Assembly: GCA_002104905.1 (NCBI GenBank)
Contig: MCFE01000532.1
Span: 1-61,663, forward strand
DNA from: Basidiobolus meristosporus CBS 931.73
Taxonomy: Eukaryota > Fungi > Basidiobolomycota
Length of the DNA: 61,663 bases
Direction: 5' to 3'
Below the pieces are notes generated by a model. The model had not been told where the DNA came from and did not search any database. It saw only the letters and a program-made list of their open reading frames with translations. Shown one piece after another: positions 997 to 5,852 of the stretch; positions within the stretch are counted from its first letter, which is position 1; every line of letters starts with the position of its first letter. The position numbers and the translations under genes are program-made.

Positions 997-3993
997 TCAA
1001 CTGTCATCCTCGTCATCTAGCCAAATCATCCTCTGTATCTTCACAACCTCATGTTGCATGGGTTGAGAATATTTCCGTTTCGTCGCCGACATACAAGAGC
1101 CTTTGGTTGGATTTGATGCCACTTTTGAAGGGCTATACTTTTTGGTCCCATTTGAAACTAATAACGGATCCCAGTTAACGCGTTTGCGCTCATGGCCTTC
1201 AATAGAATCCGCGTTTGGACGGAAATCGTCGGAGGGAGCAGTGAATTTTTGCTTTTGATTGATCCTATCTAATAGCTTCTTGGTTGGGCTGGGCGGTCTA
1301 GGAACGCCCATCTGAATGGGGATGAACTCAAGTGTGGCCAAGTGATACCCAGAATTATATTGTGTAAGATCCTTTGTAGCTGTGCGTAGGGATGAAGCTT
1401 TGACTTCGCTAAGCGGGCACTCTAAGGTCACTGGGGGCTTCCGCTCTAGTGGATTCTCATCGGAGGCTTCAATTGTGATGACTTGCATAGCCGGATCGTT
1501 CTCTGGTTCAGATAAAGGAGCTGGTTTGGTTTTCGGACTACGGCGACCCTTCGCTGGATTCTTAGGAGTATCTTTCTTTGGCGCAGCCTGTTGAGCTATC
1601 CCATTCTGTGGTTTTGTTTGTGCATTGGACCGTAGACGAGAGGAAGAGCGGAGTGAGCGGGTAGCAGCGGGTGGAGCCTTTGACTGCTCTGGTACAACGA
1701 CTTCACTTGCCTCAGTTCCCAAGGTTTGTTCCTCGCTGATCTTCTCGGGCTCAACTGAGATATCACTATCCGCTGGGCTCGTTTCGTTAGTCTCAGTTTC
1801 TTGCGGCGGCTGCTCACCCGAACCCGTACATTGCTGTGTTTCAGATTTATGATCTAGTTTTCTAACTAAAGATTTTGGCACATTAACAGACATTCTTCTC
1901 TGGTTCAATGTATCCTGAAGGTCCATCATACTTGTCTTCTTTCGCGGAGCACGGCGTTTCTTCTCACCAGGAGTGTCTTCCATACGAGATGAATCTCCTT
2001 TAAGTTGGCTCACTGTTTGACCAGCAGCAGCTGAAGATGCCACTTGCCCGAGCTCATCCGCGGTAACTGGAGTTATTAGCACTAGATGTGGTGACGCACT
2101 CTCTACGCCTTCAATAGCTGCTCCCTCGCTATATGCCGCCTCAACGATATTTAAATAAGCACTCTGAACCTCTGCTGTATCGTTTGGCTGGCCGTTGTCG
2201 GGATTCGAATGTAGGTCATTTGAATCCGAAATTACGACAGATGATTTTGAGCTCTTCTCAACGTGTTCTGAGCATTCGATCATTTCGCTACAAATAGAAG
2301 ATTAGGCCTGTTGCTTATGATATCAACCAAGCTTATGTATCCATACCTTTCAGATAATAAAGTAGTAGTCTTATTATTAGCCTCTATTAGGGAGGTATCA
2401 GCTGTGTCAATTAAAGAACTTGGAGTACTCTCATCTCTGAGTGAAGCGTCATCATCATCCACAATGGAATTTGCACCATCGGCACCATCAATGGCCTCCT
2501 CTCGCAAATTACACGTGTCTCCTTCATCCTGCCTTTGAAGTGATCTTAATGCTGAAGATTTGTATGATAACGAGAATTGTGCAGACGGCTTCAAACTAGG
2601 CTTTGTCTTCAATAGTTGTGAGCCGAGAGATGACTTGATACTTGATTTTTTTATGGTCAGCGATTTGGAGAGCGCGGATTTTCCTTGGGAACTGAGTATA
2701 GAGCGAGCTGCTTCCGCTGTAGCAACATCGTTTCTGCTAATGGATACTGGTTTGCGAAGTGTTGGATTCAAGATCGAGTTTTGCAACTTGGATGACAAGG
2801 TAGGCCTCGAGTCTGATTTGCGAAGAGATACTAATTTCTTCGCACCTGCGGTATATGAGGAGATTCTTTTACTTTCCTCCATCTCTGATGACTGTGGTGA
2901 ATCACTACCAGCGCGAGACGCCTCGTAATCGGCAGACTCAACCGAAGGTTCCTTAGAAGCTGAGAAAGGCAACTTTTTTAATTCATGTGCTAAGGAATCA
3001 TCATCCTCACTGGAACCGGGAATACAACCAGTATCGCCTTTTTTAATTTTCAAAGGTCTATGCACGGTACGATTTTCGTCGAGTAGATCAGTATCTTCGT
3101 CTGGTATAGATGTTCTATTCTTCAGCACAGTTGTAAATGACGAGGGTTGTCGGGTATCCTTGGATCTCGCAGAGATCTTGAAGGTTTTCATGTTGTCAAC
3201 CACTTCTGAATTAAGACTCGGAAGCTTTCCAATAGATCTCTCCTGATGAACTCCGGGACAATTTCCTTGTTGCGGGTTTCCAATATTCCGAAGCGTCTTT
3301 CTTTTTCGAGGAGCAGCAAGAAGGTTCTTCGTACTACCGCTTGCTTTAACACTGTACGAATTTTTCTTGTTTTTGTGTGTTTTCGATATGCTTTCTGTAA
3401 GTTGGCTAGATCCACCATTTTCGTGTTCACACTGTTGTGCATTCTCAGCTAACTCGTTATTAGGCTTCAGCTCTGATAACCCCCCTTCTGGCTCAGAGTG
3501 GTTTGAATTTTCGCTTTCGATATATGCTGGTAGGGAGGGCGCCTTGGGAGAAGCTTGCTCGCTTGCCCTAGTTGATTCATCGCGAAGTTTGTTTTTGGAG
3601 TGGCTCGGCTGTGAAATGACGGGGGAGTCTCTAGAGTCTACATTTTCACCTGTGGTGTCAGCGTGGTCAGAATCAATGTCTCCAGTTTTCACGAGGTTCG
3701 TTTTGATATCGCTGTAAACGTCCACATGTTTAGACAGGTGACACGGATTTCAAGTATGTGTGCTTAAAGTAGATGGAATACCTCTCGGCGACGATTTCGG
3801 CCTTTTTTGAAACGTTTGGCTTCGCCGCTTTCACGCGGCTAATAGGTTTTATTAGTGCACAGGAATGAAAGGGCACCATGTTGCAGGATACATACTCAGC
3901 TTTGTTCTTTTTGCCACTCGCGCGAACAACTGGAATAGTATTGTTTCTTCTCCGTTTCTCAGTAACTACGTGTTGCCCGATATGACCGAGCAT
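997..3993 (-). CDS. Large (~950-1000 aa) Ser/Lys/Glu-rich disordered protein with short C-terminal motif blocks; function unknown; start codon uncertain
   Basis: ORFs 3730-4005, 2280-3725 and 997-2283 join in frame through GT-AG introns, e.g. the 59-nt intron 2288-2346 (GTATGG...CTAAT...TAG) giving LLSE-S-EMIEC, and introns near 3714-3780 and 3840-3895. The C-terminus carries LRTATKDLTQYN, RPPSPTKK, KRVNWD and KIQRMIWLDDED blocks. Confidence 0.75.
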
Positions 3994-4835: not shown

Positions 4836-5852
4836 TTATGCCCAAGGCTCAAGACAATGTTTAGGGAAGACGCCTTTGACCTTTCCACGGGTTTCGTTGA
4901 TTCCTTGAGCCCAACCGTCGTCATACTGATGAAGTAAGGTAACCATATCTCCAGGTAGAATCTCGATCTCATCACCTAGAGTAGGGGTATATGTACTAAC
5001 AACAAGATAAGGGCCCTGGAATTGAACATCCTTGCCCGTGGACACTTGGCCTCCTGCCAACATGCCTGGATTGGCGCTCTCTAAGGTAGCAGTCTCATTC
5101 AAGCGGGCTTTGATTTGACGAGAAGTAGAGCGCTTACGCACTACAAACAATCCAACTGCTAGAAGGCCTACACAACCCGCTGAAGCTAGCCCAGCAATAA
5201 GCCCTTTGGGGACATTCTCCCCGTCAGTTTTCACTTCGTTGCCATTGGAATCAATCGTGTTGGCTGCCGACCCGTTGCGATTTTCCGACTCCATGTTCTT
5301 GTTGGGTTTCTTACCCACGAGTTCAACATTCGTACCTTGGGGTTCTGAGGGTGATCAATCGGAATGCGTAAACGTCTGCACAGAAAAATGCTTGGGTAGT
5401 CAGAGGAAGAAAACTCTCTTACCTTTAGTTTTTTCGAGTTGCAACCCTTGGCACTCGACAGTTTGCTTACCCACATCACATAGGAACTTCTTGTTGTTAT
5501 CTGCGTAGCACCCATACACCTTTCCCGCTGGAGTGTTGGATACAGCATTGCACTCAACAGCTGCACCCTTTGCGCTTAAACTCATGGCCTTCGGAATGCT
5601 GTCGACTTTACAAAAGCCACGAGTTTGCTTCGTCTTCCCGTGTGGCTTGGTCAGCTCACACCAGGGCTTTCCGATGGAGTCGACTTCGATACAGCCAAGG
5701 TATTCGTGTCGTTTGTAAACAAATGATGCGGCGCAAAGCTTATAGTCTACTTGGGGAAGATTCTCGGGGACAGTTTCCGGGGTGGTAACATTTTGGCTGG
5801 TAATCGATCCAGCAAGGAGCGTAGCAGCGAGAATTGCTAACAAGGACTTCAT
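4836..5852 (-). CDS. Type I membrane protein (312 aa): signal peptide, fibronectin type II-like Cys module, second Cys module, TM helix, cytosolic SH3
   Basis: Exons 5423-5852 and 4836-5344 join in frame via intron 5345-5422 (GTAAGA...CAG). Signal peptide MKSLLAILAATLLAG; C-x3-F-x-Y-x4-Y-x2-C...WC...GFC module; TM LIAGLASAGCVGLLAVGLFVV followed by RKR; SH3 YTPTLGDEIEILPGD...DDGWAQG...GVFPKHCL. Confidence 0.85.

Follow-up and report, generated by a model that had tools for sequence, protein, structure and literature searches.

Does a fungus carry a genuine fibronectin type II (FN2) domain on its cell surface, and if so, what could such a domain be doing there? The question is raised by a gene on the minus strand at positions 4836-5852 of a 61,663-nucleotide stretch of DNA from Basidiobolus meristosporus CBS 931.73 (contig MCFE01000532.1 of GenBank assembly GCA_002104905.1, positions 1 to 61,663 of the forward strand; hereafter the window), for which a receptor-like protein with an animal-type FN2 module outside the cell and an SH3 domain inside had been predicted from the sequence. 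A survey of 2007 classed the fn2 domain as deuterostome-specific (PMC2394772), and in 2018 FN2 was still said to be found in "vertebrates and invertebrates" (PMC6211748). Here, the gene product is described as a predicted membrane-anchored SH3 scaffold with an FN2 head. It is probably a surface sensor or anchor that recruits SH3 partners, and a member of a vertically inherited fungal family.

Gene structure and domain layout

The interval 4836-5852 is exactly one coding sequence, with its ATG at 5852 and its TAA at 4838-4836. Exon 1 (5423..5852, minus strand; 430 nt, 143 codons plus 1 nt) encodes the signal peptide and the entire cysteine-rich ectodomain, corresponding to residues 1-143 of the protein. 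Exon 2 (4836..5344, minus strand; residues 144-312) encodes the polar stalk, the transmembrane (TM) helix, the cytoplasmic linker and the SH3 domain, and ends with the stop at 4836-4838. The two are separated by a phase-1 intron of 78 nt (5345..5422, minus strand; GTAAGA...CAG), with the GT donor at 5422-5421 and the AG acceptor at 5346-5345. The split codon 144, G|AA, gives Glu and the frame is kept across the junction. A protein search showed that the spliced product of 312 amino acids (aa) is letter-for-letter K493DRAFT_341313 (P0101) of B. meristosporus CBS 931.73, so that the gene model of the original prediction is that of the Joint Genome Institute; in GenBank the protein is labelled only as hypothetical or SH3 domain-containing. 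Residue numbers below are those of K493DRAFT_341313, which was used for whole-protein analyses, and domain searches were run on the separate exons.

That the two exons are joined, as originally proposed, agrees with the identity of the in-frame model to the database protein. A paralogue on contig MCFE01000505.1 (L001) is interrupted at the corresponding position by an intron of 95 nt, also of phase 1, and relatives on short contigs contain the whole architecture in uninterrupted open reading frames (ORFs), both of which support the splice. An alternative acceptor about 30 nt upstream, inside the intron, was rejected because the reading frame then meets a stop. Comparison with the paralogue indicates purifying selection, with nonsynonymous differences (pN) of 0.21-0.26 against synonymous differences (pS) of 0.65-0.81 and a dN/dS of 0.16 for exon 2; in a DNA comparison of the window gene with L001, similarity is limited to the exons. 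Judging from its sequence, the locus is an expressed-type two-exon gene for a type I plasma-membrane protein.

The predicted protein starts with a signal peptide at residues 1-20 (MKSLLAILAATLLAGSITSQ; 5793..5852, minus strand), recognised by reading from its basic residue, hydrophobic core and small polar end, and the N-terminus of every family member is comparable to a predicted signal peptide. The ectodomain comprises two four-cysteine modules, module 1 at residues 36-82 (C40, C54, C65 and C81; 5607..5747, minus strand) and module 2 at residues 88-137 (C101, C115, C125 and C134; 5442..5591, minus strand). A polar stalk of about 55 residues, which is not Ser/Thr-rich, extends to about residue 188 and leads to the TM helix at residues 191-212 (G191-V212, GLIAGLASAGCVGLLAVGLFVV; 5139..5204, minus strand), followed by RKR. 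Apart from the signal peptide, no other stretch has a mean Kyte-Doolittle hydropathy above 1.6, and the position of the helix is conserved across the family. In the cytoplasmic tail of about 100 residues, the only recognisable element is the SH3 domain at residues 256-310 (4845..5009, minus strand), which ends about three residues from the C-terminus. With RKR on the C-terminal side of the helix, the protein appears to be a type I single-pass protein, with the N-terminus outside and the SH3 domain inside. A second four-cysteine module, a single TM helix and a C-terminal SH3 domain had all been foreseen in the original prediction, and all are present.

The eight ectodomain cysteines are found in at least 11 of the 12 aligned family sequences, the lone exception being the truncated fragment P0010, and those of module 2 are kept in every family sequence that extends that far.

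Module 1 is an FN2 domain

Module 1 reads C40-AASFVYKRHEYLG-C54 ... W64-C65 ... G79-F80-C81, and its spacing, C-x13-C-x10-C-x15-C, falls within the FN2 pattern of about C-x13-C-x10-12-C-x14-16-C. The motif is thus present as had been predicted, including the 'AS' that stands at the usual FN2 'FP' position. The aromatic core (F44, Y46, Y51, W64 and F80) is retained, and the four FN2 cysteines, which pair 1-3 and 2-4 in FN2 domains, do not vary among the 11 family members in the module 1 alignment. In a phmmer search, bovine PDC-109 was matched (E 1.2e-5). The gathering cut-off of Pfam fn2 (PF00040), 22.2 bits, is exceeded by six relatives, among them the paralogue P0001 (22.9 bits) and others with 23.5, 25.3, 26.5 and 35.3 bits. 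The Pfam check suggested for this module thus gives a clear signal in its relatives and a borderline one in this copy.

The family signal is stronger. A module 1 profile built from the 11 members and searched against PDB (E<=0.01) matched 17 distinct sequences, 16 of which are FN2 domains; the best were PDC-109 (3.3e-7) and MMP-9 (7.8e-7), and fibronectin, factor XII, Endo180 and MMP-2 were matched as well. The remaining one, a partial match to the neurotrypsin kringle (6e-4), is consistent with the known kinship of FN2 and kringle domains. When 1.84 billion representative proteins were searched exhaustively by HMMER with a two-sequence ectodomain profile, 77 matches were returned. Among non-family matches, Pfam fn2 was detected in 50 of the 51 scanned as a batch and in nine of the ten scanned individually, the tenth being the chytrid protein P0018; the named ones are animal proteins, such as a turtle ELSPBP1-like and a salmon-louse MMP9-like protein. 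No Pfam WSC (PF01822), Kringle (PF00051) or chitin-binding match was obtained for exon 1 at E<=10 or for relatives at E<=0.1. By sequence comparison and predicted structure, module 1 is a genuine FN2 domain, borderline in this copy taken alone and clear at the level of the family.

Predicted fold of the ectodomain

The ectodomain (residues 21-143) was modelled with AlphaFold2 from a 12-sequence family alignment, giving an all-beta model with a mean predicted local distance difference test score (pLDDT) of 89.8 and a predicted template-modelling score (pTM) of 0.80. Foldseek ranks 1-10 against PDB were all FN2-containing structures, with E-values that are weak, as expected for small modules. 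Independently of Foldseek, the model was compared by VIA-align with 48,161 representative PDB chains, and only eight reached Z>=2, all of them FN2 domains, two on module 1 and six on module 2. Module 1 (model positions 18-66) superposes on PDC-109 with Z 2.9 and a root-mean-square deviation (rmsd) of 2.5 Å over 42 residues at 26% identity, and fibronectin was also matched. Module 2 (model positions 67-118) aligns with FN2 domains from IGF2R, factor XII, PLA2R and fibronectin, with Z 2.0-2.3 and rmsd 2.2-3.0 Å over 44-48 residues at 8-13% identity. A kringle, WSC or chitin-binding fold, which had been named as the outcome that would overturn the FN2 assignment, was found neither among these chains nor in Pfam.

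At the sequence level, module 2 gave no PDB profile match, and its alignment to module 1 with hhalign had a probability of 19.8%. According to the model, module 2 is FN2-like in fold and highly diverged, which extends the originally predicted layout by a second module of FN2-like fold with no sequence signal. When modelled alone, module 2 reached a pLDDT of only 59.8, too poor for a structure search, which suggests that modules 1 and 2 act together as a unit. The FN2 module and module 2 are accordingly modelled as packed into a single rigid extracellular unit of about 105 residues. This is supported by a protein of the chytrid Cladochytrium in which the unit occurs in three copies, and by a match of the whole unit to bacterial proteins: in the ESM Atlas, the ectodomain as a whole best matches an 'alkaline phosphatase D family protein' cluster of Pseudomonadota with Pfam fn2 (hereafter PhoD+fn2; TM-score 0.74 by query, 104 residues, rmsd 2.3 Å). 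The existence of bacterial PhoD proteins with Pfam fn2 suggests that FN2 is not confined to animals and fungi, and with a bacterial cluster as the best structural match, the description of the module as animal-type seems overstated.

The SH3 domain and the C-terminal tail

The SH3 domain exceeds the cut-offs of three Pfam families, SH3_9 (39.5 bits, cut-off 30), SH3_1 (26.3, cut-off 22.9) and SH3_2 (22.3, cut-off 21.8). Its closest solved counterpart is the second SH3 domain of p47phox (E 2e-10), and the Trp of the binding groove (DDGW) and the 'FP' Pro are present. It is 66-77% identical to the SH3 domains of Umbelopsis (66%), Piptocephalis and one further relative, and conservation this high between Basidiobolus and Umbelopsis suggests that its partner is conserved too. 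A word search with the SH3 region returned Basidiobolus proteins plus one other protein only, and one with exon 1, in a limited length window, returned a single paralogue.

Many family members outside Basidiobolus carry a KR-x-SS-type tail right after the SH3 domain (KRVSSM, KRTSSF, KRISSI, KRCSSN, KRSSSS, QRSSSNL and KRSSSN; carriers are P0103, P0104, P0112, P0014, P0033, P0034 and P0036), and K493DRAFT_341313 itself does not. The tail may serve as a phosphorylation site for a kinase, or as a ligand that the SH3 domain binds within the same molecule. It is similar to the R(S/T)(S/T)SL peptides to which the SH3 domain of Fus1p binds, a likeness taken here as a lead only.

Distribution and descent of the family

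The full layout was found in six genera, Basidiobolus, Conidiobolus, Neoconidiobolus, Entomophthora, Piptocephalis and Olpidium. It is present in Basidiobolus ranarum (P0002, P0100, P0007 and P0109), B. meristosporus (K493DRAFT_341313, P0108, and P0001, whose TM-SH3 exon lies just downstream in L001), Neoconidiobolus thromboides, Conidiobolus coronatus, Entomophthora muscae, Olpidium bornovanus and three further transcript-like contigs. Piptocephalis cylindrospora also has it (P0102, 627 aa), with Cys2 and Cys4 of module 1 lost and one predicted disulfide; beyond residue ~400, P0102 looks like read-through into non-coding sequence. In databases, family members are labelled only as hypothetical, 'SH3 domain-containing' or 'Fibronectin type-II domain-containing'. 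The original prediction knew of no fungal case of the layout. It is in fact conserved in Entomophthoromycotina, Zoopagomycotina and Olpidium, the range of its ectodomain unit extends to Chytridiomycota, and paralogues carry automatic FN2 labels in UniRef.

The chytrid case is Cladochytrium replicatum KAI8803833 (P0018; L002:3001-4690), which has three tandem units of FN2 plus module 2, followed by a single TM helix and a short tail that lacks SH3; this makes the unit an old and mobile fungal building block. Conversely, Mucoromycota have the same highly conserved SH3 domain behind a TM helix with other ectodomains, mucin-like in Umbelopsis vinacea P0112 and a different Cys-rich domain in Mucor plumbeus P0119. 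On sequence grounds, the TM-SH3 half is common to this family and to mucin-like-TM-SH3 proteins of Mucoromycota. Look-alikes of the whole protein and of its TM-SH3 half in Ascomycota and Basidiomycota score below 0.9 in the ESM Atlas and are leads only.

In a maximum-likelihood tree, the sequences group by taxon: the two Basidiobolus clades are joined (85/92), the Entomophthorales are joined (90/92), and Olpidium plus one further sequence are set apart (100/100). With the ectodomain as query, tblastn (E<=1e-3) detected no relative among 185,579 species genomes of bacteria and archaea, in a scan that finds close relatives only. The distribution, the taxon-wise tree, the evolutionary constraint and the lack of a close bacterial relative together indicate a family of early-diverging fungi (Entomophthoromycotina, Zoopagomycotina and Olpidium) that was inherited vertically and not acquired recently from an animal.

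Relation to known surface proteins

With the animal FN2 proteins (PDC-109/BSP, fibronectin, MMP-2/-9, factor XII, the Endo180/mannose-receptor family, IGF2R, PLA2R and SEL1L), K493DRAFT_341313 shares the cysteine spacing and the aromatic core. The predicted tandem pair of modules also recalls fibronectin, MMPs and BSPs. Unlike these, it is a predicted fungal single-pass membrane protein with an SH3 tail; it has AS for FP and H71 and R78 in the pocket, its module 2 has no detectable FN2 sequence similarity and a shortened C3-C4 loop, and its two modules appear to be fused into one rigid unit, whereas animal FN2 domains are beads on a string. The bacterial PhoD+fn2 proteins differ even more. They are soluble or secreted enzymes without a TM-SH3 part, and the likeness is structural only: no sequence-level relative was found among the bacterial genomes scanned or among the 77 matches of the exhaustive search.

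Among fungal proteins, the closest parallels in topology, which is predicted here, are Fus1p of Saccharomyces cerevisiae and TmFus1 of Talaromyces marneffei, both type I proteins with a C-terminal cytoplasmic SH3 domain. Fus1p is a type I plasma-membrane protein with its SH3 domain near the C-terminus of a tail that binds polarity and fusion proteins (PMC2063912, PMC10315666). Its ectodomain is short, O-glycosylated and free of cysteine and its tail contains a proline-rich region, whereas here a folded, disulfide-rich FN2 pair is predicted outside and the tail is about 100 residues long. A Ser/Thr-rich ectodomain like that of Fus1p is found in the Mucoromycota relatives, as in Umbelopsis P0112, but not in K493DRAFT_341313. 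The yeast proteins Sho1p and the Wsc/Mid2 sensors likewise couple the surface to cytoplasmic signalling without enzymatic domains, Sho1p through a C-terminal SH3 domain. Sho1p differs in having four TM helices and no ectodomain. Wsc proteins resemble K493DRAFT_341313 in having an eight-cysteine domain outside the cell, then a stalk, a single TM helix and a tail, but their ectodomain has a WSC/PAN-type fold and their tails lack SH3.

Function and alternative explanations

Taken together, these results make it probable that K493DRAFT_341313 is an FN2-headed membrane protein that acts as a surface sensor or anchor. The ectodomain is predicted to form a compact binding module that is locked by disulfides and carried on a stalk, and with a tail of about 100 residues that ends in SH3, the only conceivable output is the recruitment of an SH3 ligand to the membrane. 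In such a protein, the FN2 unit would contact an extracellular ligand, such as a component of the wall, a partner cell, a substrate or a host, through its partly retained aromatic pocket. The membrane-held SH3 domain would then concentrate a conserved partner, possibly from the polarity, mitogen-activated protein kinase or actin machinery, at the contact site. By analogy with yeast Fus1p and Sho1p, this would work without any enzymatic output.

Several observations weigh against this reading. K493DRAFT_341313 itself scores 20.9 bits against Pfam fn2 (E 3.6e-4), just under the cut-off, and the structural Z-scores of 2-3 are weak in themselves, though expected at about 45 residues. The FN2-like fold of module 2 is seen in the predicted model only. 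In module 1, His71 and Arg78 occupy the positions of Tyr100 and Trp106 of PDC-109, and most other family members keep the Trp, so that the ligand pocket of this copy may differ or be degenerate; in PDC-109, Tyr100 and Trp106 help to bind phosphorylcholine. On the cytoplasmic side, the ALYDY-equivalent of the SH3 domain is STYTP, in which the second ALYDY Tyr is absent, and the 'SNY' stretch likewise lacks its Tyr, suggesting that SH3 specificity may be non-canonical.

Of the other explanations, the one that survives best is a sharper version of the surface sensor or anchor itself, namely that the protein is an early-fungal orthologue of a Fus1p-type fusion scaffold. In that case, the ectodomain would serve only to anchor or place the protein in the wall where fusion or contact occurs, the SH3 domain would do all the work, and the folded ectodomain would later have been replaced by an O-glycosylated mucin-like stalk. 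The topology and C-terminal SH3 domain agree with those of Fus1p (PMC2063912), the Umbelopsis protein supplies a relative with a mucin-like ectodomain, a TM helix and a 66% identical SH3 domain, and the KR-x-SS tail recurs in many family members. On the other hand, the cytoplasmic tail of Fus1p has 416 residues (PMC2063912) compared with about 100 here, K493DRAFT_341313 lacks the KR-x-SS tail, and the dikaryan look-alikes score too low to count as more than leads. Orthology to Fus1p is thus conceivable and clearly less likely than the general sensor or anchor role.

A narrower role, in which the protein is a host receptor or adhesin that binds collagen, gelatin or phosphocholine and signals host contact through SH3, appears unlikely. 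In its favour, canonical FN2 domains bind gelatin/collagen or phosphorylcholine, and the proteins PDC-109, MMP-2/9, fibronectin and Endo180 are the top matches here. Most of the carriers are animal-associated fungi (Basidiobolus, Conidiobolus and Entomophthora), and the core residues Trp64, Tyr46, Phe44 and Phe80 are kept. But the pocket substitutions His71 and Arg78 speak against it, and the family also occurs in Olpidium bornovanus, a plant-root parasite, in the mycoparasite Piptocephalis and, as the ectodomain unit, in the saprobic chytrid Cladochytrium, which weakens the case for a collagen-specific or choline-lipid role.

Recent horizontal gain of an animal or bacterial FN2 exon by a gut-dwelling Basidiobolus is very improbable. 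Basidiobolus lives in vertebrate guts, and the ectodomain as a whole finds its best structural match in the bacterial PhoD+fn2 cluster; both would fit such a gain. So would the view of FN2 as an animal domain (PMC2394772, PMC6211748). Against these stand the presence of the eight-cysteine unit in six genera across three fungal phyla and subphyla plus a chytrid, the grouping of the gene tree by taxon with Olpidium apart, the spliceosomal intron in the gene, an identity of at most ~30% to any animal FN2, and the empty scan of prokaryotic genomes, within its reach of close relatives.

Finally, that the FN2 likeness is a chance cysteine pattern on another fold (WSC, kringle or chitin-binding), as the sub-threshold Pfam score, the 'AS' for 'FP' and the low Z-scores of this copy might suggest, is essentially refuted by the Pfam, profile and fold searches, in which no rival family was matched, relatives exceeded the fn2 cut-off, the family profile reached FN2 structures at 3e-7 and every PDB chain at Z>=2 was FN2.

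The paralogue and the neighbouring sequence

The paralogue is represented in databases by K493DRAFT_75840 (P0001, 171 aa; L001:4001-4995, MCFE01000505.1), a gene model that is cut short. Its reading frame continues past the donor at L001 4425 into intron sequence, and it omits the TM+SH3 exon, which is intact at L001 4520-4995 and 69% identical to exon 2 of the window gene. Downstream of the gene, window positions 997-3725 (minus strand) hold two long abutting ORFs of 428 and 481 aa that are low-complexity and Ser/Pro/Lys-rich, and positions 2730-2861 resemble the gene downstream of the paralogue in L001, hinting at a segmental duplication.

Significance for early-diverging fungi

No paper linking FN2 to these fungi (Basidiobolus, Entomophthoromycotina, Zoopagomycota or Olpidium) or to PhoD was found in the library searched; two apparent literature matches for fungal FN2 were rejected as 'type III' matches. 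The gain in knowledge is moderate, since the genes are already in GenBank and UniRef under automatic domain labels and the function is a proposed one. With FN2 at the head of a receptor-like protein conserved among early-diverging fungi, the domain has a wider range than was known. The carriers include pathogens of humans and insects (Basidiobolus, Conidiobolus and Entomophthora), and the protein is a candidate surface sensor in fungi with almost no known signalling receptors.

The family also suggests that Fus1p-like membrane SH3 scaffolds may have begun with a folded ligand-binding head. In its boldest form, which we regard as speculative and rather unlikely, the FN2 pair would be an ancient fungal ligand-binding unit that was already present when Chytridiomycota split from the lineage of Olpidium and the terrestrial fungi and is not an animal invention, and the family would be the ancestral, ligand-specific Fus1p-like scaffold whose head was later swapped for a mucin-like stalk in Mucoromycota and Dikarya. 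If this were true, these fungi would possess a ligand-gated surface receptor in mating, hyphal or host contact, and FN2 would be tied to a function older than animals.

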